Shown here piece after piece: positions 1 through 15,020 of a DNA stretch of 15,020 nucleotides (position 1 is the first letter of the stretch; each line of letters begins with the position of its first letter). The notes below the pieces were generated by a model. The model was not told the DNA's origin. It made no database searches and saw only the letters and a list, made by a program, of their open reading frames with translations. Origin of the DNA: Octopus sinensis (taxonomy: Eukaryota). A program made the position numbers and the translations under genes. The stretch is from positions 1 through 15,020 of the forward strand of contig NW_021825749.1 in assembly GCF_006345805.1 (NCBI RefSeq), given 5' to 3'.

Positions 1-165
1 TGAGTATATGAACATACATAATATGCATATATAGAATAAAATGATTATTTACAAAATATACATGATCACAAGAAGAAATAAAATAGTCAAATTTTTGTAC
101 AGTTTTGTAATTTATTTAATAATTTAAAAGTAAGAAAAAATCATGAATTCAATGAAAAAGTAGTT

Positions 166-1298
166 TCAAATATTGTCAGAATTTTGAGAAGATTTTTTAT
201 GATTAGTCATTTCCTGTTTATAGTCACTGCACAAAGGCTTAAAATGAATGCTTTCATAAATCTTTCCAATCAAGTCTTGTTTCCTAATTTGTTTCAGTGG
301 CCATATTTTTATGAACAACAATTTGCAGTGCAACTATAAAAATTTAAAATTATAAATTACCCAGTAATTCTTGTTAAAAAACATGTAAAGGAGTGGATTT
401 GCCAACGAAGAAAGCAACATTAGCCAATGAGTGGAAAAAAATATTGCATAGATATGTCGAGCATCATCCACTCCCTCCACGGCAAATGAGCGCGGATAAA
501 ATATGTAGATAATATATGTTATTTTGTATGGAAGACCAGAGATTACAAAAACCAGTATTATGGTTACTGGAAGCATTATTTTCTGGCAACGTAGAATTCA
601 CAGATTTACCTTTTTTGGAATATTATTTAAAAAAATAGGATTTGACAACTTTATGATGATTAGTGTGTATATTATGATTATTAAAAACAATGGAATGACT
701 AATAAAAATGCAGTCAAAAATGCTGCGTAACCTCGATCTTCCAATCTTTCTTGACATATTTCGATTTGCATGGAGCAACTAAAGTCACTTGCAGTTTGTT
801 TCAAAATAAACAAGTTTACTGAGGATATTCCAACAGAACAAATCCAAATTGACAACACAATAGATTTTATATGCGGTTTGATTTTTTTCGTAGCCATAGG
901 TTGAACAGAGCTACAAATCTGACAACGGCAATTGTTATATCAAACCAAATTGTGGCACAAACTGCTGACTGTTTCAAGAATTTGACAAGTGGGCATGTCA
1001 CATGTCCGTTTTTCCACTTTACTTGAACCATTTCAGTAAATGTGATGGGAATATAAGACAAATTCAATATTATATCTGCAGCAGCCAGGTTGCAAAGCCA
1101 TACACCAATGAGTCCACCTGCTCCCTTCCCGCATCGATAAATGATCAACACCAATGCGTTTGTGAAAAGAGAAGATAAAATTGTACAAATATACAGCAAA
1201 CGAATAAACAAAAGTCCGACAGGGGGTATTATCAAATCAAAATTATTTGTGATAAAACATTGATTTATTTCTTCAAATATGATACTCGAGTTGTTCAT
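166..1298 (-). CDS. Class A (rhodopsin-family) GPCR, peptide-receptor type, about 359 aa; 3 exons (1298-610, 582-361, 333-166); one 1-nt frameshift near 899-900 (assembly error or recent pseudogene)
   Basis: Joining ORFs 867-1298, 598-897 and 334-576 gives seven TM segments with class A motifs: TM1 TNALV, TM2 NLAAAD, W..G..TC into TM3, IAVVRF (DRY position), TM4 IW, ECL2 Cys, TM5 IP...Y, TM6 GLPY, TM7 NPLLY. Two 27-nt GT-AG introns (609-583 and 360-334) remove the in-frame stops and open a 55-aa C-tail ending at TGA 168-166. Confidence 0.88.
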
Positions 1299-1709
1299 CA
1301 GTGTAAAGATCTACTTGAATTGTTTATTGCGTGTTAACTTGTACGAACTTTGTTTTAGTAAAGTGGTCTTGGTGATGAAGCCTAATTAAGTGGCAATTGG
1401 ATAATGAAATCCCCTGGGATAAATTGATTGGCTTTTATTCGAATTTTTTTTATTTTTTAATTAATAAAATGGTCTTTTCAGAATATTATTTATATAAAAA
1501 ACTCATTCATTTTTGATATTTTCGATTTTGATAACAAAATTAACTTTTTTATTTTTCAATCTAATTTCGTTTAAAAATAAAAAAAATGTATAAAATAATA
1601 ATTTTTCTAACTCATTATTCTACTTTTAAGTTAAAATAGTAATACAATTATGTCATAGGTTTTTGCCTGGACCCGGCATCTGCTCGGACCGCAAGCGTAT
1701 TTTAAAATA

Positions 1710-2876
1710 CAGTGCTCGTCAAAAAAAATTGCTCAGCCATTTTTTCATGCTTTTATTGACAAATTAATAAAAAATTTAATCTTAAGCTTCATTTTTTATT
1801 CTAATTCTTAAATATAATAATTTATTAATGCGATTTTATTTCAATATAAGGAATTTAAAGCATAAAAATTTAAATCTCGTGACAAAAAACATTGCTCACT
1901 TTTCTTGTTATTGCATATGCCACGTTCTCCCAAGAAACAGTTAACTGAATTTAAAAAAGGGATGATTATTGCGTACTTTAAAGAGGGTAAATCAATCAGA
2001 GAAATCTCAAAAATACTTAATTTGCCGTATTCCACAATTTCATTTAATATTCGAAAATTTCGAGAATTTGGAACACTGCATCGGAGACCGGGCTCAGGAC
2101 GTCTTCCGAAACTAAGTTCCCCCCAAATACAATTTTTATGTAATGAAACCGAATCACATCCTACATTGTTGGCAGTGGATTTGTCCAACAAAACTAAAGA
2201 CTGTTAAGTTCGGATTAGGGAGAGTTATGATTTGGGGCTGTATATCGTATAGTGGTGTAGGCAATTTGGTTTTTATCGTAGAAACTATGAACTCTGGATA
2301 TTATATAACTTTACTGTCTAATAATCTGGACCAATCAGCTGAAAAAATGGGCTTATCCTCGTTTATTTTTCAACAGGATAATGCTTCATGCCATACATCT
2401 CGTATGGTTAAGGCATATTTCGAGACCAAAAAATATATTATTCTTGATTGGCCATCGCAATCACCGGATCTTAACCCAATAGAGCATGTATGGTGCTTTA
2501 TGAAAAGAGAATTAGCTAAAAATCCCCCGAAAAGTAAAAAGGATCTAAAGACAATAATATGAAAATTTGGCAGTCAATTCCTAAAAGTTTTTTACAAAAC
2601 TTAGTAAATTCAATGAGAAAAAGGAGTTATTCTTTATATTTAGCAAGGGGAGGACATATTAATTACTGATAATGAGATTTCCAAATTTGTGCTAATGTTT
2701 TTTGTCTTGCAATTTTTTGTTTTGTTTAAGTTTGTAAATAAAAAAGAAAAATTTTATTATAAAAATTAAGGTATAATAATAAAATACTACTTAAAGATGT
2801 TTACAAAAAAAATAAATCAGAATAATGCTATATAAAGACATAAACATTGGTGAGCAATTTTTTTTGACGACCACTG
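1710..2876 (+). mobile_element. Tc1-family DD34E transposon, internally deleted, non-autonomous
   Basis: 26-bp TIRs at 1710-1735 (CAGTGCTCGTCAAAAAAAATTGCTCA) and 2851-2876, with one mismatch. TA duplication at 1708-1709 and 2877-2878. Transposase relic inside. Confidence 0.95.
1917..2669 (+). pseudogene. Tc1 transposase pseudogene
   Basis: N-terminal paired-like HTH (SIREISKILNLPYSTIS; RPGSGRLPKL), then TVKFG..VMIWGC, QQDNASCH and WPSQSPDLNPIE (34 residues between D and E), C-terminal GGHINY*. A deletion at about 2195 removes the second HTH and the first catalytic Asp. Frameshift at about 2558. Confidence 0.92.
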
Positions 2877-3065
2877 TAAAAAAATAGAAAAAAGTTTATT
2901 AACGGTCGTAAATACATATTTATTAATTATTTTTAAAAAGAATAAGAAAATTCATTTCTACAATTTCAACCAAAATTGTAAGATATTTTATCGATATCAA
3001 AAAAGCTTGTAAATGTATTACTTAAACAACCAGTGATAACTACATCTAAATCCGAAAAATACAAA

Positions 3066-3348
3066 CAGAATTCTCTTCCCAGCGAGCCCAATCACACCAC
3101 TCGTCTTCACTGTAATTGGTACGAAGTTATATGCGTCGGGAAAAAAGATAGAAAGCCGGGACACGTCACAGACTAAGTAACTGCCCCGGAGCAAAAGTGT
3201 CCGTACAGGTTACATCCCATACGAGAAATTTCCCCTTACTGAATTGGAAGACCTTCATTTTGTCCAGACGCTTGCCGTCTCCATGATCAAGACCAGTCGA
3301 CTCTAGAACCGAAGGAAAGCCTGCGGCACTAAAAGCCCAATTGGTTAC
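3066..3348 (-). mobile_element. Fragment of a CRE-clade non-LTR retrotransposon (restriction-like endonuclease domain)
   Basis: The minus strand reads AFSAAGFPSVLESTGLDHGDGKRLDKMKVFQFSKGKFLVWDVTCTDTFAP, then YNFVPITVKTSGVIGLAGKRIL. This matches the remembered RLE pattern EPxGLxRxDGKRPDG..WDxTCxDT..YxFxPxAxETxG. It is also a GC-richer island. Confidence 0.78.
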
Positions 3349-3636
3349 TTTTTTGGAAAATGAAATGTAGATAATGATACTATAATTTGCTATTCACTAA
3401 TAATGCCGCTGATGAATACAAAAGCTTTATAAAAAGTGTAGTGAAATCTATTTCACTGTAAACGCCCAATTATCAAATAAATTATAAGAGACTGTAAAAT
3501 TGGTAAATTTGTTGGGAATTAAAAGCATTTTTACAGAATTATACTTAGGTATCCAATTTGAATTACCATGTAACTGCAAAAGTTCAAATAAAAGATTTCA
3601 GGCGGATCTTATTGATGTTAGAAGATATGAAGATTT

Positions 3637-3692
3637 TCATGTGGTTCACCTTCTCGTGGAGACGTCATGTGGTTCACCTTCTCGTGGAGACG
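3637..3692 (+). repeat. Perfect 28-bp tandem duplication at the LINE 5' junction
   Basis: TCATGTGGTTCACCTTCTCGTGGAGACG at 3637-3664 and 3665-3692. Confidence 0.98.
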
Positions 3693-3730
3693 ATTGGATG
3701 CTGATTTCACATCAGCAACAAACAGAACCA
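3660..3730 (+). ncRNA. Putative HDV-like self-cleaving ribozyme at the LINE 5' end
   Basis: P1 3660-3666/3689-3695 (6 of 7 pairs); P2 TGGTTC 3670-3675/GAACCA 3725-3730; P3 ACC/GGA (2 of 3); L3 TTCTCGT; GG 3696-3697 available for P1.1; perfect 7-bp P4 3699-3705/3711-3717; C-containing A-rich J4/2 that is 2 nt longer than canonical. Confidence 0.65.
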
Positions 3731-3789
3731 ATTTTTCCCCCTTGCCAACCAACCTGTCAACGGTTTGGTTGGTAGTGGCTACGGGACGA

Positions 3790-3858
3790 GCGCCAAGCTT
3801 ACGTTCCCTGACTCTATTGTTGATTCGGTGTGGAGATGTGGAACAAAACCCTGGACCT
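3790..3858 (+). other. 2A-like (StopGo) ribosome-skipping peptide
   Basis: SLRSLTLLLIRCGDVEQNPG/P, a perfect D(V/I)ExNPGP motif (3835-3858), in frame and directly before the APE domain. Confidence 0.88.
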
Positions 3859-6800
3859 GAGCCTATTAGAACACTAACCATCCTTCAATTGAACATCAAC
3901 GGGATTTCCAAGAAATGCAATGACCTACGCTACTTTCTACACACGAACTCTATTGATATAGCTCTTATTCAAGAGACCAAACTTACTCCAAATCCCAAAC
4001 CCCCGTTTTAAGGGATATTCCACCATTCGTCGTGACCGCCAGTCTGGAAAGCCTGGCGGTGGTCTCATTACTCTCATTCACGAGGCCATTCCCTTTGCAG
4101 ACTCAACTGCCAACATTGAATCTCTCTTAACTAATGATCGATTTACCGAAATTTCATCTATTCAAATTAACATTAACAAGATATGTTACTCTGTTGTTAA
4201 CACATATATCCCCCCGATTTCGTCATGTGCTCTCAATTATACACCGAACTTACTGCCTCTTTTTTCAATTGAAAACTGTATTCTATGTGGCGACTTCAAC
4301 GCCCACCATCCTCTCTGGTTATCCACAAACAAAACTGACAAACGTGGCCAGCAAATCACAACGGATGCGGAAGAATTGATCACTCTAAACAACCCTCTTC
4401 TACACACCCGCTGTGCAATGCGACCTGGAGATTCAAACACTTCTCCTGACATTACCTTATGTTCCCCAAACATCGCCCTCGACGCCAAATGGACAGTTCT
4501 GTACGACCTACCAACGGACCACAATCCTATTCTAATCAAAATAAACATCACCCTGTAAAGAAGAGAATACGAAGACCTACATTAACTACAAACGTGGGAA
4601 ATGGGACTCGTTCAGGAGTGAAACTGAACGTATATTCAGTAATTTTTCTTGCTCCTCCATTCAATCATTTGACGCTGCCGTTGCTTTCTTTACTAGTACA
4701 CTTCTTTCTGCGGACAAAAAATTATTCCCCGCGGCTTCATCCGAAATCACGGCCTCCACTTCCCCCCACCTATCATTGAACTATTCAAAAAACGAAGGAG
4801 GATCAAATCGACGACTTCTATCAATGGAAATGGAGAATCTCTAGCAGAAATCAACAAACAAATTGACGAATTAATCAAGAAACATAAAATGACGAATGGA
4901 ATGATTTTATCACTTCAATAACCCCAAATACTGGATCCCGTGCTTTCTGGAGAACCCTCAAGAAAATTCACACGAGGCAAACATGTCCCCTCTCACATGC
5001 CACCGGTATCTCGACCAAAAAATCTGTCCTATCTTTCCAGGATCAAGCCAACATCTTAATTCGCCATTATGCAAAAATCAGTCACCTTCCTACCCCAAAG
5101 GATCTCCGTTTCGTAAGAAAATCACATTATAAGTCAAATGACAATTCTACTGACTATATTAACATCCCAGAATCATTTACCAGGCAACTTGTTGTTAACT
5201 CGCGGAATTCTAACGCCAGAGGTCCTGATGGCCTTGCCATCCACCACCTAAAAAATCTGGGTCCTAATGGCTTTCTGGCTCTGACCAATTTAATCGAATA
5301 CTCGATCAACCATGGTCTGGTTCCTATGCTTTGGAAGAAATCTACCATCATCCCTATCCCAAAGCCAAATCGTGATACCTCTGACCCCTCCTCTTTTCGA
5401 CCTATCTCTTTGATCTCAGTGGTTTCAAAAATAACAGAGCGAGTTGTATTGAGCATCATAAAACCTTTCCTCCCATTTGCTGAATCTCAACATGGCTTTC
5501 GTTCTTTGCATTCCACTTCCACCCATCTTTCAAAACTGACACAATTCATTGCGGATGGGTTTAACAATCATAAGCCACCTCAAAGAACAATTATTGCATC
5601 CATCGACATTGAAAAGGCATTTGACAGAACGTCAAGACACGTTCTGTGTAGGAAAATAACCGATACGGAATTCCCCCACCAAATAAAGTCATGGCTACTC
5701 TCTTTTCTCTCTGGGCGTCTTGGTCGCACCACAATCATGTCTTCTTACTCACGCTACACAATACTTGCCTAACGGAGTTCCCCAAGGCTCGGTCCTTTCA
5801 CCTGCCTTATTTAACTTACATCTGTCAAATATCCCGACGAACAATAATACTCTACTTCTCTCCTACGCTGATGACTTAATTTTTGCCTCCCGCCACCAAA
5901 ACATAATCACCGCTTCTGGATTTCTGCAGGAACACATGAACACTCTTTCGTCCTGGCTGAAATGCAATCTTCTTCAACCTTCTCCTTCCAAATCATCTGT
6001 TACGCTATTCACAACTGACCGCCGTCAGTTCAACTTAGAGCCTAAACTATTCCTAGACAACACTCCACTCCCAGTTGAAAAATCCCCCAAAATCTTGGGT
6101 CTGATATTTGATTGCTGTTTGTCCTTCTCGAAACATGTTTCATATATCTGTGGAAAATCCCAGAAAAAACTCAATGTGCTCCGAGCTATTGCGGGTACTT
6201 CATTTGGGCAGGATAAGGAAAGTCTAACAACTGTATACAAGCAGTTTATTAGAACAACTATGAACTACGCCATCCCTGCTTGGGGTTCCTGCTTATCTAT
6301 ACAAACCTTGAAAAACTTCAGAGAACTCAAAACTCAGCATTACGAATTATTACCGGCTGTCTAAAAACGACACCTACCGACCACCTACATTGGGAATCGA
6401 AAATCCTTCCAATCAGTGACCATTTTGAAATGCTCGGGCTGCAATTTCTTGACAAATGCCGAACCCTAAATCACCCTGGCTACTTCCTCTGGCACTCCAC
6501 TAACAACAGGAGAATAGTTCCGACCCTCGCGGACAAAGTCCGCAAGCTTATACGATCCCCTCCGGACATTAACCAGAAGGGGATTCACGACCTGGTGGCT
6601 ACGAGGGCAATCAGATGTCTTGGAATAAACAAGCTTCTGGGACGCCTTCCGCCGCCAATTAATAAGATCGAATCCTCCCTCTCAAGAGAAGCCCGAGTGA
6701 ACTTGGCTCGTCTCCGCTGTGGCCACCATACTGGCCTACACGATTATCGCATAAAAATCGGTCTTGGTGAAATAACCCCTTCCTATTCCTCAACGACCTT

Positions 6801-6928
6801 TTCTCCTGTCCAGGCCCGCCTTCTACTTCCTCGGAACACCGGATCACGATCGGGGATCTTGGGAGCGTCCGACATTGGCCCTAACGTTCTTGTTAGCCAC
6901 CGGCTTCCTTCAATTGAAGGGGCGGGGG

Positions 6929-6954
6929 TAAATAAATAAATAAATAAATAATAA
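6929..6954 (+). repeat. (TAAA)5-TAATAA microsatellite 3' tail of the LINE
   Basis: Read directly; it abuts the 3' TSD copy. Confidence 0.95.
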
Positions 6955-7554
6955 ATGAAGATTTTAAAAATGGATATAGACATTTACAGTAAATCTGTAA
7001 TCTAATCGGTAATGTTTAAAATTTACTTTGAGAAGTTAAAAATAAATTCAAAAAAGAATATGTAGGTAATCCTGGTCGCCAGCCTGGGCAACAACATCTT
7101 TTAATCATTTCTTCTCAATTTAAACCGAATTTTATAAAAGAGTATTTAGTTTTACTATTTTTATAACCGTTTTGGACCGATTTGTATTTATAATCATCAA
7201 AAATACAGACATCTATTTTTAACAAATACATATATCATATCTTGAGGTATTATGTTTAATAAATCAATTTTATAAAACATAATTTGATTTTAAGATTACT
7301 TACGACATTTTGTCACATGTTACATTATCGACCTTAGTTATCTTAACCAAAAATACTTTTCCAATTTAGTGTCGAATTAATATTTCAACTCAATTTAATA
7401 AATATTATTTGCTTTTCACTTATCTTACTACCTAAAATATATTGATGCTCATCGATAGACACTACATATTTAATGGATATTTTCCCGAGGTAATGACGTA
7501 AATAATTAGTTAAATATAGGCTGTTACTAATATTGCTAGTTATAAAATTGATGC

Positions 7555-10147
7555 ATGAATACTAAAATGTACTCTGAGATTGGTAAAGTTTGTCTACAAA
7601 TGTTTTCTAGATATTTTTTCTCATAAACTTGCAGACATTGAAAGAAGGCTATTTAAAAGCGAAAGTGTCTTAGACGCTTTGAACAGCAGTTTTAAACATC
7701 TATATAGCAGTTTGTTTGTTTTGAAATTTTTTTCTAGTTAAAAACTGCGGATCCCCAATAAAGTTAATGTTTTAATTTTATATTTAGTAAAAAAACCTAT
7801 TACGAAATTTATTTAAATAAGCTCAAATATCAGAAGCAAATTGAATGTCTAAATTGGTTATTTTCCTAATGAATAATTTACTTTTAGTAAGAAATATCAC
7901 AATAATAAAAATCATCAGCAAAATTTGACTTCAAAAAATAGATTTGGAAAAGTTATTGTGAAAAATAATAAAAATAAATACAATTTCTATGTTGTCGAAG
8001 AAAGTAAAAAAGATGACGTCAAATTAGAAATTGAATGGATGTTTTTTAATAAATAATAAATTCAATTTTAGTTATTCATTTGACAATAAAAAATCAAAAA
8101 TGTTTTTTAATGATTCGCGAGAATTGACATATAATGTTGGGAGATTTGTAGTATTTTTTGATCCAGATGAACACACTCAACGAATATATGATCAACATGA
8201 ATCCAATATAAACATGTTTATTTGATTTAGTAATATTTAGAATCTGTTTTCATCCAAATAAAGTAATTTATGCAACAACAGAAACTACAAGCAATTTAAA
8301 TGTTTTTTACTTTTGAAAATATAATTCAGATCATAATCAGAATTTGGGATTCGTATACTTTCCAAACCAAAAAAATTATCAAACTCGACGATTCTGTCAA
8401 AAAACTGACTTCACTGTGTTTTTCGTCAGATCTTGTAAAATATATCTAGCAAATGTAGTCGAATGGAAAGTTCCTTGTTGGGATCTTTCAAGATATTTCT
8501 GTATTTGTTGCTGTCCTTAACTGGAGGGCTGACAGAAAAATAGCTGAAATAAATCTCGTTATATTTAATAATAAACTTCAGGGATCGTGCTTTAGGCAAT
8601 ATAATTTGATTTATTCACCTAAAACAGAAAACTTGTTTGTTTCATGGAGCAAACAGCGCTTATGGCTTTTTGTCATTGAAAATAATGAATTGCACAAAAT
8701 TCCAATTAATAAAGTTCATCTCTAAACCATTTTTGTAGAAATATGATCCTACATGCCACACAACTTGTGGTATTTTTACCAACAGCGGGGATATTGTTCT
8801 TGGACTCTCTAATGGCACACTTGAATGTTGGAGTTTTAGTATAAACTACTATTTTTGAAATTTAAGAATCACAAAATATGTTATATCGTATTGATAAAGC
8901 CCATTCGGGGACAATTTCTTCAATGCTTGTAATTACTGAAAATAAAATCGCCACAGCTTGCGATGAAGGGTTCGTGAAAATTTGGAAGGTCGGTACAAAA
9001 CATTGTATTAACACATTTAAAGTATATATCACATTTCAATTTTTAGATCGAACAGGATAAAGGACATGTGATAAACTTATCCTCCGATGGACCACACATG
9101 ATGTATTTGATGACCTCAAATCATATAATTTTATTATTAAAAAACATGCAAATCTCGACGATTTTTGAAGTTAGAATATATTGTGAATTTCATTAGAGTC
9201 ATTCAGTCAAAATATTGGATTTGTGTGCTTCTAGACTCCATCACTTTATTATAACAGGAGACGAGTCTGGAAGATTAATAAAGTGGGATTTAGTGACGAA
9301 TAGATTAATTAAGATAATTAAATTATATGTAAGTCATAATTACTATTTCATAAAGATACCAATTTCATCAATAACAATAAGTCACGATTGCACTCAAATT
9401 TGTGTTGGGTCCAAAAACGGCCAGCTAGTTGTTATCGAATCGATTACATTGACGGAACAATGCTCAATAGAAGAGGTGTCAAGTACAGTAATGAAGTCTG
9501 CATTTAATGCCGATAATTCAAAATTGGTCGTTTATTACAGCTGTGGAAGTATACATATTTTTGAACGAGAAAATTCAAAAACAACGTATCAAAAATGTTT
9601 TACGTTTTTGGTATTTATTTGAGATTATTTTATTTTTTATATTGAGGACTGTCCAATCGAGAATATCGTGTGGTCTTGGGATGGGACTTGCATAGCTGCT
9701 AATTCAGAAATAACTAAAAATAAAATATTTTCTTGGAACATTTTGAAATTGAATGAACAAACTTTTAACGAATTTAATAATACTCAATGGATGAATAACA
9801 AATGCAAAAAAGTAGGATTATTACATGGTTATCTTCAAATAAATATACATTAATATTTTAGATTTTTTACAGAATAAATATCATAATCACGCGCCAGCTT
9901 TTGATTTATCAAACAATTCAGATTTAGTAGTTCTTGCCAACAGTGTTGATTTGCTGCAATGTTTTAATATATTTTCTGTATTTATTATCAAATTTAGTGA
10001 GTTTAGGATGTGAAAATACCTGAAAATGAACGATTTTATAAATCATTAAAAAGGGTAAATAAATTGGTTTTATGTGCGAATGATAAAAAGATTTTATGTA
10101 TCGAAACAGATTCGTCATATTTTTATCAATTTAAATTAACTAGATAA
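7555..10147 (+). CDS. EML: Echinoderm microtubule-associated protein-like (EML/EMAP) HELP-WD40 protein, about 705 aa, 18 exons
   Basis: Exons 7555-7582, 7611-7709, 7738-7762, 7788-7856, 7888-8040, 8072-8215, 8241-8301, 8330-8434, 8459-8557, 8582-8713, 8739-8838, 8867-9021, 9047-9169, 9197-9328, 9356-9610, 9647-9827, 9862-9977 and 10007-10147 sum to 2118 nt, an open frame ending in TAA. Features: N-terminal coiled coil (KLADIERRLFKSE), HELP-like KLEIEWIYSF and ELTYNVGRFVVFFDPDEHTQRIYDQH, then WD repeats (IRIWDS, AHSGTISSM..FVKIWK, ITGDESGRLIKWD, IVWSWDG). Start codon (7555 or 7567) and paralog are uncertain. Confidence 0.88.
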
Positions 10148-10222
10148 TGAGACTAATTTTTAATTTGAAATAATATATAGGAATTTTGATTTTTATAAGC
10201 AATTTAATGGAAAATTCATTTT

Positions 10223-10749
10223 AAAGAGGCCAGGCCAGTTAGCATTGCATTGATATGTACGCTATATGATTCTTCTTCACGTCATCCTGACATGTTTGTA
10301 CCCTAAAGAGAATACAAGTCCGATCTTGTTACCTCCAATGCGGAGTTTGTTCCGAAAATTTTAAAACAAGCGGTTAGTAATTTCAAAATGAAATTTTGAG
10401 ATGAGCGAAAAAACTGAAGGAGTCATTAAATTTTAATTTTCAAAAGATCCATAATAAAAAAGATTGATGATTCTTGTCAAAATATCAGAACATTCGAGGT
10501 ATTTGTCACAGCTCAACGTGGTCGGCCATCTCCTAAAATTCTCAAATTTGTCAAAAAAACCACCCATAAAATAATTAGCAGGATGAAATTTTTCCGCGTT
10601 TATGACAAAAAAATATTTAAGAGATTGGTTTAATCATCTCGAAGAGGAGTCCCGATAGTCGTGAAACGAGCTGGGTTTTTCAGCGGATATCGTTCGCGAT
10701 ATTACGTGGAAATTGCCTGTCCATCCGCTCGGCGACTCATCTAATTTAG
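10223..10749 (+). mobile_element. Second CRE-clade RLE-domain relic (C-terminal end)
   Basis: 10621-10749 reads EIGLIISKRSPDSRETSWVFQRISFAILRGNCLSI*, the typical QRxSxAxxRGN end of CRE ORFs. Upstream degenerate motifs (RHPDMFVP, TFEVFV..GRPSP) are weaker. Confidence 0.62.
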
Positions 10750-10964
10750 TTAACTTCTCTATTTTACTTGTTATTTTTTTAAATATATTTAAGACCTTGT
10801 ATCTTTTTAATTTAATTATCCACTTTAGGAGAATTAATCAACTTAAAAAATTAAATTTCTATAATTTCTATATTTTTAACCATTTTTATGATATTTCAAA
10901 ATTAATATTTTTAAAACACGTTTTTTTGTTGTTAGTTAATCTAATTGAACAAGTTTTAATATAA

Positions 10965-11436
10965 ATGAACCCAACTTCTTTCAATACTAACGACAACCAA
11001 ATTCAAGATTCTTTAAACGCCATGTCAACTTCCATCCGGAGAATCCTACGGAAGAAAGTGGCAGACCCAGTAATCCTAAGCAAGCAAGATTTCAATACAG
11101 AAACAATTTCCGAGGATATAAAACCTTCCCGTTCAATTGTAATATTAAAAATATAAATTAACAGAACATAATGCCAGAAATGTTTTTCCATCAATCTCTT
11201 GACTCATACGACCAAGAATTGGAAGATATATTACTAAGAACAAGTCAGAAGTATTTCTGTTATATTATCAAATAAGAGCTGTTCTCAAATTTGTGTCCCA
11301 GGCTAAGAAAAGAAAGGCCGAACTATCTGCAGAACCAGAGGATAAGCAAGGACGTGAAAAATCTTCAAATAAAAGGAAGAACAGTTCTAAGGCACTTACC
11401 AAACTTGATTTCCTTCAAATGCTTAAACCTGAGTGA
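10965..11436 (+). CDS. 3-exon gene (10965-11138, 11165-11250, 11277-11436), 139 aa; possibly a divergent TAF10-like histone-fold protein
   Basis: Two 26-nt GT-AG introns give a continuous frame ending at TGA 11434-11436. MPE..DQELEDILLRTSQKAVLKFVSQA and ALTKLDFLQML resemble TAF10 IPD..DPRIIRLISLAAQKFISDIANDA and TLTMEDLTPAL by eye. The gene model is firmer than the product call. Confidence 0.62.
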
Positions 11437-11479
11437 AAGTTTTTTTATAAAATTTTTATTTATCTTTTTATTAATCAAT

Positions 11480-12030
11480 ATCTAATGTGTCCTCAACAAA
11501 CATGTTTCCAGAGTGAAATAATGTTGACTAATTGTTATTTTGTTCAGTTTTTTGATGATGGAATGACGATCAAATTTTTTGTGAGTTTTTTTGAGTAAAT
11601 GTTAATTTCATAAAATCTGTCAAACTCAATAAAGCCAAATAATCAAGAATTTTTCTTTTATGAGATATGTATAAATTACTTGGAAATTTCTAAATAAGGA
11701 ACTAATTTATCTTATTTTTATCATAAAGGACACAATTATCAATTTTGGCATTTTTTGATAGTTTTAAGAGGAGAAGGTTGTGAACAGTAGACATGAACAT
11801 TGCAATACTCTAATGATGGCTCAATATGTATCAGATGATCTATCACAAAAGTCGGCAGGTTTTTTGGCTTCACAAGATAAAATTTTGTTTTTTATGTGAT
11901 GCGGGCCAAACGAGAAAAAATATTAATTTTTAAACAAGTGAATTTAGTTTTTTAATAAAGGTCTACGTTAATCTCACTAGTTGGCAAAATTAATGTATTG
12001 TTAAGATGCGAATCAGCTATTCTTCTTAGA
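11480..12030 (-). pseudogene. Possible highly decayed non-LTR reverse transcriptase relic
   Basis: One stop-riddled frame reads TLILPTSE..FTCLKINIFSRLARI, loosely like the RT pattern (VLIPK..YRPITCLNTIYKILAR). No YADD motif is visible. Confidence 0.25.
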
Positions 12031-12611
12031 CATTGATTGGTCGCGCCTAGCGCTCAGTCTTGCACTGCGCTCGCGACATATTACATTTTATTCATAAATC
12101 CGTGAAACGTGATGAAATTTCTAATTTCAATTTCATAATTATCTTTGCATATATTCATACAGATCGATAGGATTTTTAGAAAGAAAATCCACAAAATCTG
12201 CATTTTCTTTTTGTAACTAATTCGCACAATTTCAATTTATTTTCAAAAGCTTGAAACAGAGAATTTTCGGAGAAATTATTTATGTTAAGCTATAAAGACT
12301 GTACTTATTTGCTGATTCTTTGTGTAACAGATCGAACAAAATTTGCTTTTTTTATTGGCTTTGGCAAGTAGGAGTGAAATGGCAATAGAATGGAAGCCAA
12401 GCACTTGAGTGCTAATAAACCTGTTTGCTAGTGCAGATTTTTGTTGTTGTAGCAATTACTTAAATGAGAACTTTGAGGGTCTATGTGGAGCAGGGTTTTA
12501 TGTAAACATTTGTTTTACATGACTTAGTCTGTCCTACGCAAGTTTTCAAGTCACAAAACATTTTGAAAGCATCAAAGTAGCTGTTTATTAACTGTTACTT
12601 TTTGCTCGACA

Positions 12612-12757
12612 TTTAAGACATCTGTTAATTGTACTCAAACTGATGTTTATCTTATATTCGGAAAACTACATGTCTTTTAACTTTGATAGTGTCAATACTG
12701 GATTATCTTCAAACAAACTAAAATGTATTGCTTGTGTAAATCATTCAATTTGGATAA
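12612..12757 (-). mobile_element. Tc1/IS630-like transposase HTH fragment
   Basis: LSKLNDLHKQYIL..EDNPVLTLSKLKDM*FSEYKINISLSTINRCLK (one frameshift, one stop) matches the enP..TL.el......i.vS.sTi.R.L winged-HTH pattern. Confidence 0.45.
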
Positions 12758-13502
12758 ATAATCTCTACAAAATAGAGAATTGAGCTAACCATTAACCAAA
12801 AGTAATTGAAAAAGTCAGAATGGAAAGTAGCATACCCAAAGTAATTCTTTCTCATACTTCAGGGTAATGTGAGTAAATTTTATAAAAATTACTGTGACTC
12901 AATCGGTCTTGAAGGACCCACATGAGCGTACACTCAGTCGGCGGTTAGTATGCGCGCAGAACACAAGTTTGGAATGATCTCCCCGGAAAAATGCCAAAAA
13001 TCTCGGTTTACAAATAGAACAAATGAGAGATCTCTTCTGAACATGACATTGAATCAGATTTGAGAACAACCACAAAAGAGAGTAGCCCTGTGAGATGGAT
13101 AAGTGTAACAATCAAAGAGATTGGGTCTGGTTTGAAAAAGAGAAGAATTGACTGACGCATTAATTAAAAACTAATTTCATTCGGATCTAAATTTTTTATG
13201 TAAATAATATAATTTTAAGAATAAGATTTATATCAGAATGAATGACCAATTATTTATAAAAATAATAAATTTTGAATTGTTCAATTTATTAGTTCTTTGT
13301 TATTCAATATTTAATATTGTGAGAAATAAATGATATTTGTAAAGAAATCTTTATTAACAAGATATTCTTTGCAGATTTGAAAAAGATACTCATTATTTTT
13401 ATCAAGCAAAATATTGAATAAATTAATTTTATTTTTGTACACGAAACTTTATATTATCGCTTTTTGACTGTTATATTTCCAGTAAATACTCAAAAAACTC
13501 AC

Positions 13503-13856
13503 ATAAAGACAGAGTTTGGTTGGACTCAATAAAAAGAATTCCCTACTAATCTCGAGAGATGAGCACAGAATCATTTTGGAAATCAGAAAATAGCCAAGAA
13601 TTGTTTTTGGACATGAACTAAACATTTAAACCAATAAATTTGGAGAATTCAAATTCCAAATTTTTTTTAAATGTTTGATCATTTAAATAAACCAACAACT
13701 TTCAACATTGAAACTCTTAAACTGACTTCTAATTAATTTTTAACTGTGCAAGATAATCAAATTGATACTGTATTTAAATGTTCACAAAAATATAACCATA
13801 AATTGTGGAATATTCGACGAGGCCTTCAGAAAAATTAAAGTTACTACAAGGAATAT
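13503..13856 (+). mobile_element. Possible decayed BEL/Pao LTR retrotransposon pol fragment
   Basis: Ordered motifs IKTEFGWT, ESFWKSE and KLWNIRRGLQKN*SYYKEY resemble Pao TxLGW, LExFWxLE and RLxxLxRxLxKN...Y. Several frameshifts are needed. Confidence 0.3.
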
Positions 13857-14050
13857 GTCTTTTTGGATTTTAAAGGTCTTACCAATCGTTCAGTTTTCAT
13901 TAAAAGAACAAAAATTAATTTAACAGTTAATCAAACAAATTTCTATTCAAAATATTTCAATTTTCATAATTTATTGTCTAGATGGAATGTGACTAATATA
14001 TCGGAAAAAAGGCTTGTTACATTTGATTGAAACTGTATTGGAATAATAAA

Positions 14051-14748
14051 TGTGACCGGTTTCTGAGCGGACCCGGTTTTTGGAAGGACCTGGTGCGTAT
14101 ATTAAAATAAAAAATGGATAAAATAATTTATTTTCACTAGAAAATAAAAATTGGTTTTATTTTTTATTATATTATTGTAATAATTAATTAATTAAATTCA
14201 ACATAAAAAATGGGTTTTGTTGTACTTTCAAAAGCAAATCTTCAAAAAATTAAAAAAATCAAAGAGTTGAGGGATCTAGATAAAGTGATTGAAAAAAGAG
14301 AAAAGCATAGATTTAGAATTCACCCAAAAAAATTTGAATTCTCTGTCGGAAAGGCATTTATTCGAAAAAACAATTGCTTATTCAGATTTTTTTGTATAGA
14401 AGAGAGAGAACTAAAGCCATCAATGATTGAGGTTATCTATAAATCTCCTTATGTTTAGAAGGCACATAATTCTAATCATTTTGGCAGAGATAGAATGATT
14501 AGTCAGAAAAAATTTACGGTGTTACTCGAAATGAGATTGAAAATGTTATTAAAAACTGTGTTTTTTGTCAGGTATAATAATTAAAATAAGGCGATTAGTC
14601 AAAGAGATTAATGGCAACAAAACCTCCTATTAGGCCAATCATTGCGAGAGGCCCGCGTGATAGATACATAGCCGATCTCATTGACTTAAGGAGATATTCG
14701 GAATTAAACGATTCAAATTTATGGGTATACTTTTTGCTCGACATTTAA
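14051..14748 (+). mobile_element. Ginger-like integrase transposon, copy B: left terminus plus 3'-truncated intron-containing integrase pseudogene (14210-14748)
   Basis: TGT terminus with two 17-bp subrepeats (14056-14072, 14073-14089). Removing 27-nt introns 14432-14458 and 14572-14598 gives an HHCC finger (KAHNSNHFGRDRM..KIYGVTRNEIENVIKNCVFCQ) and an rve core start (SKRLMATKPPIRPIIARGPRDRYIADLIDLRRYSELND). One frameshift at about 14510. Confidence 0.8.
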
Positions 14749-14765
14749 GACACCTAGCCGAATGT

Positions 14766-15020
14766 CGATAGCGCAAGGATTAGAGTTAATGCATAAAACA
14801 TTATGGCCAGGTAGCCGAATGGTTGAGTGCTCGTAACTAAATCCGCGTTCTTGGTCCCGGGTTCGATTCCCAGAGGCTGCCTGTGCCGCATGGAACGGAT
14901 CTCCGGATGGGATGTTGAGCTTCCTAGTCTTCTTCAGCCACACGCCAACATAAAAAAACAGTTAAAAAGAAACTCTCCCACCTCGGGCTTGATGCATTAG
15001 CTCTAATCCTTGCGCTATCG
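14766..15020. repeat. Inverted repeat of at least 29 bp flanking the tRNA-like head
   Basis: CGATAGCGCAAGGATTAGAGTTAATGCAT (14766-14794) is the reverse complement of 14992-15020 with one mismatch. The right arm is cut by the window end. Confidence 0.95.
14805..15020 (+). mobile_element. tRNA-derived SINE-like element with Pol III A and B boxes; runs off the window
   Basis: A box TAGCCGAATGG at 14812-14822 and B box GGTTCGATTCC at 14860-14870, with tRNA-like spacing. The T arm is near perfect, but the acceptor and anticodon stems do not pair. A GC-rich non-tRNA body follows. Confidence 0.7.

Follow-up and report, generated by a model that had tools for sequence, protein, structure and literature searches.

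A conserved HDV-like ribozyme fold enclosing the start codon at the 5' end of an octopus LINE family

Does an octopus LINE carry a self-cleaving ribozyme at its 5' end and, if so, is the copy in which it was noticed a working one? The question is raised by a 71-nt segment (positions 3660-3730) of a 15,020-nt stretch of Octopus sinensis DNA (contig NW_021825749.1, positions 1 to 15,020; hereafter the window), which a preliminary description had read as an HDV-like ribozyme at the start of a Vingi-type element. HDV-like ribozymes have been found at the 5' ends of elements of the R1, R2, R4, RTE, LOA and Ingi clades (PMC5786205, PMC3774820, PMC3185411). Another example at a LINE 5' end would be unsurprising because these ribozymes are already known to trim several LINE clades; the literature that we searched contained no report of them in octopus, cephalopods or molluscs. 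What we observe is that a LINE family opens with an HDV-type fold, which is conserved and shows covariation, and that this family has an in-frame AUG in J1/2 and a leader with a 2A motif. We favor the possibility, and judge it likely from the sequences compared here, that the first 71 nt of this family (GATCGTC-AUG-...-GAACCA) form a genuine HDV-like self-cleaving ribozyme.

The segment lies near the start of a non-LTR retrotransposon copy on the forward strand (3638-6954), as do all of the element's features given below. Because it is bounded by an 11-bp target-site duplication (ATGAAGATTTT at 3627-3637 and, identically, at 6955-6965, the two occurrences of this 11-mer in the whole window), the insertion measures 3317 bp and starts at 3637/3638. 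This places the 5' end 22-23 nt upstream of the AGACGTC at 3660, where the preliminary description had put it. The copy comprises a leader with 2A, an endonuclease, a reverse transcriptase (RT; Pfam RVT_1 matches in ORF pieces at 5326-6364) and a (TAAA)n 3' tail (6929-6954); its GC content is 0.40-0.48 versus approximately 0.27 in the flanks, and its ORF is interrupted by several frameshifts. The nearest proteins, with 57-59% identity, are the uncharacterized Octopus sinensis LOC115228999 and LOC115229537. A Vingi assignment would call for a single endonuclease-RT ORF of ~1000 aa, a length of ~3.1-3.3 kb, no RNase H and an RT that groups next to Ingi in phylogeny; with its 3317 bp, one (frameshifted) ORF and a tail (6280-6939) in which Pfam found no match, RNase H included, the element is compatible with the Vingi type. 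An imperfect 26-nt tandem repeat (two copies, 84% match) is present at 4849-4897, between the endonuclease and RT regions.

Every segment of the proposed fold, from P1 to P4 with L3 and J4/2, is indeed found within 3660-3730, and the whole matches an HDV-like double-pseudoknot descriptor with 6/7 P1 pairs. P1 (AGACGTC, 3660-3666) pairs with P1' (GACGATT, 3689-3695), P2 (TGGTTC, 3670-3675) with P2' (GAACCA, 3725-3730) and P3 (ACC, 3676-3678) with P3' (GGA, 3686-3688), while bases 2-3 of L3 (TTCTCGT, 3679-3685) pair with GG at 3696-3697 to give P1.1. P4 is a hairpin of 7 bp with a 5-nt loop (3699-3717; strands 3699-3705 and 3711-3717) that also appears in the minimum-free-energy fold, and the segment check places J4/2 (ACAAACA) at 3718-3724. 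The weak points conceded in the preliminary description are real as well: there is an A.A in P1, another in P3, and J4/2 is long. At the level of the octopus family, P3 consists of two Watson-Crick pairs plus the A.A, P1.1 contains one G.U, and J4/2 is 2 nt longer than usual, with one unpaired A between P4 and the candidate catalytic cytosine.

The P1 of the window copy has an origin of its own. A perfect 28-nt tandem repeat (3637-3664 and 3665-3692; 100% identity, period 28), overlooked in the preliminary description, runs through it. Unit 1 adjoins the target-site duplication and is a partial ribozyme copy (family nt 6/7-33): it holds J1/2, P2, P3, L3, P3' and the first 4 nt of P1', and has neither the P1 5' strand nor the 5-6 nt with which the family sequence begins. 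The ATG that it contains (3639) is out of frame, with translation from it stopping at 3702. Unit 2 runs on into the rest of the element. AGACGTC is made up of the last bases of unit 1 (...AGACG) and the TC of unit 2, so that its GACG is a copy of the P1' strand, and it pairs with the next GACG because the junction creates the palindrome GACGTC. What had been taken for the family P1 with a point mutation is a duplication junction, and the pairing is a by-product of the repeat rather than a decayed family P1. GATTTTC (3632-3638) was considered as the true P1 and ruled out, as it overlaps the target-site duplication. A plausible scenario is that, during or after integration, the cDNA slipped from family nt 6 back to nt 33, duplicating 28 nt; the layout, nt 6/7-33 followed by nt 6-end, could be produced by a backward template switch at a shared CG (C4G5 / C32G33) and subsequent 5' truncation. 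If the window cDNA ended at nt 6/7 in this manner, the true P1 strand would therefore have been lost. Slippage after integration could also have generated the duplication.

Two copies of the actual octopus family were available to us, the window copy and an unduplicated one at a second Octopus sinensis locus, L002 (3543-3613; hereafter L002a). An intact family member had been predicted to start with GATCGTC-AUG, and L002a does exactly so: directly after a T-run (...TTTTTTT) come GATCGTC, ATG, TGGTTC, ACC, TTCTCGT, GGA, GACGATT, GG, A, TGCTGAT, TTCAC, ATCAGCA, ACAAACA and GAACCA. Its P1 (GATCGTC/GACGATT) is a perfect 7-bp helix that opens with a G.U, and the copy passes the strict descriptor described below. 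In family numbering the helices are P1 1-7/30-36, P2 11-16/66-71, P3 17-19/27-29, P1.1 21-22/37-38 and P4 40-46/52-58. The identity between the two copies is 100% over 155 nt (window 3663-3817, L002 3546-3700). A further protein search revealed no octopus copies of the same LINE family; a protein search with the N-terminal ORF gave no homologues, and an exact look-up of the same ORF gave none.

L002a is a solo 158-nt LINE head (3543-3700), a fragment without a definable target-site duplication, that ends exactly where the window enters the 2A coding sequence. After 3700 there is AT-rich DNA with a minus-strand ORF (3730-3951) that looks, by eye, like a hAT/ZBED-type N-terminus, and ~300 nt downstream of L002a lies the 5' end of a different, older LINE (L002b). 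We ruled out that L002 is one element with an insertion, as the 5' fragment matches the window at 100% identity and the downstream element shows ~50% protein identity and has a decayed ribozyme remnant of its own at ~4008 (ATG TC ACC TTCACGT GGC GAAAGTT AG ...).

Could the window copy nevertheless work as a ribozyme, cutting itself 5' of A3660, with the duplication as a functional variant and not damage? Its P1 retains 6/7 pairs, P1 stems with one or two mismatches are reported in the R2 literature (PMC3774820), and three to four independent relatives also repeat L3-P3'(-P1') just upstream of P1. Against this, the P1 pairs run A-U, G.U, A.A and then four Watson-Crick, which puts the mismatch within the helix and an A-U at the opening, where the family copy and the related LINEs L044, L017 and L007 have G.U; the upstream unit supplies a P2 strand and an L3 that compete; the unduplicated copy shows that the repeat is dispensable; and the element carries frameshifts. 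We consider a working window copy doubtful. Given the internal A.A, the missing G1.U and the competing upstream half-ribozyme, its sequence suggests that it is most likely inactive or weakly active, a dead-end product.

How far the motif exceeds chance was assessed in loci around related reverse transcriptases (~350 kb, gathered by protein look-ups and one metagenome scan). A topology-only descriptor returned thousands of matches and was useless, and a loose one returned ~10 in 668 kb. The strict descriptor (L3 of the form U-N-C-N-C-G-N, P3 of at least 2 bp, all 7 P1 pairs, a P2 of 5-7 bp with no mismatch and J1/2 of at most 12 nt) was run on 86 sources totalling 334 kb (668 kb on both strands) and gave 7 matches, all on the coding (+) strand, against a mean of 3.9 in dinucleotide shuffles of the same 668 kb. 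On its own, a match to the descriptor within 15 kb of sequence carries no significance. The window motif stands above chance because it sits at a LINE 5' end and is conserved in relatives. L002a, L007 (99-180), L017 (93-165) and L044 (12-83) have their matches 2.0-2.7 kb upstream of the RT match, and in the window the 5' end lies 2114 nt from it; 4-5 strict matches fall in the expected 5'-end zones versus 0.17 by chance (Poisson P 3e-5 for 4). The fifth of these, in L030 (1254-1359), is doubtful: it passes the strict descriptor and was judged a false positive, being inside ORF1-like coding sequence and having no P1.1. In L003 (25-98) there is a compact descriptor match (GATTGTC ... AGCTGC ... 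TCCGCGT ... AACAATT GG ... GCAGCT) with a CC/GG P1.1 and no P4; the RT lies ~6 kb downstream of it, and the called genes of this contig carry Cep192 domains. The match may be another ribozyme or chance.

Four related LINEs, with 27-46% RT identity, have the same double pseudoknot at their 5' ends. We aligned the octopus family with L044, L004, L007 and L017 (five sequences, hand-registered and N-padded, P4 left out). Paired cells amount to 96.6%, versus 65% in shuffled alignments and 36-53% when partners were slid, both sides have changed in 13/18 pairs, and 0/500 shuffles reach the observed values. Part of this is circular as regards P1 and P2, because pairing in both helices was a requirement of the descriptor that picked out L007, L017 and L044. 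L004 came to light through homology (2A motif and the core CCTTCACGAGG) and not by helix pairing; its P2 is fully compensated (GGGAGC/GCTCCC), it has a P4 hairpin, its J4/2 reads CGAAAG, and its P1 is of 6 bp with a mid-helix A.A. P1.1 goes from U.G (L3 UUC... with GG) to G-C (L3 UGC... with GC) and is paired in 90% of cells. For P4, we compared the octopus family with L002b (UA>CG, GC, CG, UA>UU, GC, AU>UA, UA>GC), which gives three compensatory pairs and one broken pair; between the same two elements the core from P3 to P1.1 is 73% identical and the leader just downstream 27%. Covariation had been named beforehand as a check on the helices, and it is seen for P1, P2 and P1.1 in the related LINEs and for P4 against L002b.

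In alignments of six and five sequences the U, C, C and G of L3 are invariant, as is the C-(N)-A-A of J4/2, and the first P1 pair is G.U in 4/5 aligned sequences; the invariant L3 bases, the J4/2 C-(N)-A-A, the covariation in P1.1 and the first G.U were not selection criteria. Since the invariant C followed by (N)AA aligns with position 3719, where the conserved J4/2 motif starts, C3719 is pointed to as the candidate catalytic cytosine. The preliminary description had offered two candidates, of which C3719 is conserved and C3723 is not; it had also listed the lack of a conserved J4/2 cytosine among the findings that would refute a ribozyme, and the C is invariant in all six sequences.

These data bear on one alternative, namely that the fold is a chance pattern in coding or leader sequence, made here by the palindrome of the 28-nt duplication and without function. 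It draws some force from the window copy, in which the duplication junction directly accounts for the 4 bp at the core of P1 (CGTC/GACG), and from the ~4 matches per 668 kb that the descriptor yields by chance. Yet the unduplicated copy has the better P1, descriptor matches are enriched by position, P2, P4 and P1.1 covary in sequences not selected for those pairs, and conservation of the core is far higher than that of the leader next to it. For the family, the chance explanation is largely refuted, and we regard it as highly improbable.

Standard searches were negative. With Rfam, at the gathering threshold and at E up to 10, no HDV-type family was detected in the window, the intact copy or the four relatives, and the matches at E up to 10 were weak snoRNA/miRNA noise. 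Nested folding gave z scores of -0.1 to -1.5 (about -1), and minimum-free-energy folds choose P1 and P4 or P2 and P4. The HDV-like class has very low sequence conservation (PMC4870747), and the HDV-type models of Rfam cover narrow subfamilies. Both the Rfam and the nested-folding negatives are to be expected, because the class offers little conserved sequence and two pseudoknots (PMC4870747), and neither lends support. We also built a small covariance model of the 5' domain, which retrieved its training sequences and gave the window copy a score of 19.5 bits (E=0.046). It gave no match in L013, L018 or L086-L091; the sole other match, on the minus strand of L036, is antisense to an RT ORF and was judged chance. 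The 2A-bearing L013, L018, L086 and L087 show no clean motif, their 5' regions being truncated or full of short repeats.

The AUG at 3667-3669 had been described as the J1/2 linker, which is correct, and it opens a frame (ORF 3667-4011) that leads into 2A and the endonuclease. Residues 56-64 of this ORF read GDVEQNPGP (the 2A-like ribosome-skipping motif DVEQNPGP at 3835-3858, with a G before it), after which the endonuclease begins; the leader thereby matches, in sequence, the 2A pattern GD(V/I)ExNPGP within 40-80 aa of the ORF N-terminus. The 2A motif is also present in L002b (in degenerate form), L004, L013, L017, L018, L086 and L087 and, as read from sequence, in L007. An earlier survey found no 2A in the Vingi elements that it examined, and 2A is present in the mollusc element Ingi-1_AC (PMC3708506). 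Among published Vingi 5' ends is one of which 74 nt recur in an alligator SINE (PMC5786205). The first in-frame ATG likewise lies inside the fold in two relatives, on the J4/2-P2' border in L044, an intact element with a 1034-aa ORF, and in P4 in L017, so a start codon at this place is recurrent in the group.

A start codon inside the fold implies that the fold must interact with ribosomes, and this brings in a second alternative, that the 5' segment is structured but does not cleave, serving as a translation or protein-binding RNA platform or as an internal promoter like Pr77 of L1Tc, its HDV-like look being shared architecture only. The placement of the start codon inside the fold in three lineages, the double use of the same 77 nt as promoter and ribozyme in L1Tc (PMC3383444) and the negative Rfam result are all in keeping with it. 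The bases that are invariant, however, are L3 positions and the J4/2 cytosine, position classes reported to be conserved in active HDV-like ribozymes, namely the catalytic C and four others (PMC3774820) and the first J4/2 position (PMC10879173). The prevalence of G.U, the usual opening of P1 at the cleavage site of HDV-like ribozymes, as the first P1 pair also speaks against this alternative, and for the segment to serve as a promoter, four helices need not be kept by compensatory change. A non-cleaving platform is, in our estimation, unlikely, although less so than a chance pattern.

Our working model, which builds on what is published for R2, L1Tc and other clades (PMC3774820, PMC3185411, PMC5786205), is one of self-cleavage. 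The element would be transcribed within a longer host read-through RNA, which would fold into the nested double pseudoknot; by analogy, the J4/2 cytosine C60 (C3719 in the window) would catalyse cleavage just 5' of G1. HDV-like ribozymes cut 5' of nt 1 in a Mg2+-dependent reaction that yields a 5'-OH and a 2',3'-cyclic phosphate; here such cleavage would leave an uncapped 5'-OH RNA with the AUG 7 nt from its end. Cap-independent translation from this AUG would yield a leader of ~64 residues ending in 2A, and 2A would release the endonuclease-reverse transcriptase from a leader partly encoded by ribozyme sequence.

There is precedent for such a fold in R2 of Drosophila and other arthropods (PMC3774820), and by analogy the octopus fold would work like the R2-type HDV-like ribozymes. 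Both lie at a non-LTR 5' end and share the order of the double pseudoknot, a 6-7-bp P1 in which mismatches are tolerated, conservation of L3 bases and of the J4/2 cytosine, and a variable P4 (PMC3774820); we also count as a likeness the variable 5' junctions of R2 elements whose ribozyme cuts at the element's own end (PMC3774820). They differ in that R2 is site-specific in 28S rDNA and is cut from an rRNA co-transcript, whereas the octopus element is dispersed, with an AT-rich target and an 11-bp duplication, and carries the AUG in J1/2 and the 2A leader. In gene layout the closer parallel is with L1TcRz/Pr77 of Trypanosoma cruzi L1Tc and the ingi clade, to which Vingi is related: ~77 nt at the 5' end of a single-ORF endonuclease-RT element (PMC3185411, PMC4035085, PMC3383444), with 2A near the ORF N-terminus and immediately upstream of the endonuclease (PMC3708506), giving the series ribozyme, 2A, endonuclease-RT. 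The trypanosome ribozymes, however, start with C1 and differ in the GC orientation of P1 and in P1.1 (PMC4035085), whereas the octopus fold has G1.U and an R2-type L3. The ribozymes of RTE/LOA LINEs and CPEB3 are, as far as they are described in papers citing the original studies (Ruminski et al. 2011 and Webb et al. 2009, cited in PMC5786205, PMC4870747), alike in their minimal sequence conservation, strict topology and discovery by descriptor; according to the same citing papers they differ in belonging to other LINE clades or in being intronic.

Rearrangements next to P1 occur in several of these elements. The bases upstream of P1 repeat the element's own L3-P3'(-P1') segment in three, possibly four, independent elements: 28 nt at 3637-3692 of the window, CGAGGTGGCAGCGAG twice at 41-70 of L004, and TTCTCGTG|G before G1 at 4-12 of L044, with CAGCGAC twice at 3-16 of L086, where it resembles that element's CGGCGAC. 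The junctions share 1-4 nt of microhomology. These upstream repeats may record RT template switching near the P1 helix. In L007 (97-137), P1 can be extended to 9 bp (GGCGGCTCC/GGAGCTGCC), and the bases thereby added on the upstream side, GC, are the same two as those of L3 expected to make P1.1; because of this match, the uncleaved L007 RNA would have a competing pairing that cleavage removes.

It is tempting to join these threads. The Ingi/Vingi-like LINEs of Metazoa and trypanosome L1Tc might share an old three-part 5' module, consisting of an HDV-like ribozyme, a start codon that lies in the fold or beside it, and a 2A leader. In such a module the cleaved, uncapped fold would itself draw ribosomes to the AUG, only 7 nt away from the 5' end, and 2A would serve to discard the peptide forced by the ribozyme sequence; separately, the P1 helix might guide RT template switching at the RNA 5' end. 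If the latter were true, independent lineages would for that reason repeat L3-P3'-P1' upstream of P1. We offer this joint reading tentatively, as an idea that could be right but is more probably wrong in its full form.

With regard to significance, the locus provides a probable cephalopod example in an Ingi/Vingi-like element and would link the trypanosome arrangement of ribozyme and 2A to animals. Because a natural AUG would lie 7 nt from the predicted ribozyme-made 5' end, the family should offer a clean way to examine whether 5'-OH RNAs are translated without a cap. The rearranged 5' ends of the related elements may record how RT finishes, or fails, on a tightly folded template. On the practical side, annotation can use the 71-nt module as a marker of full-length copies in this octopus LINE family. 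Elsewhere in the window, outside the LINE copy, there are a rhodopsin-family GPCR fragment (7tm_1; 867-1298, minus strand), a DDE_3 transposase fragment (2143-2562, plus strand) and WD40/EML-like beta-propeller exons (8878-9622, plus strand).
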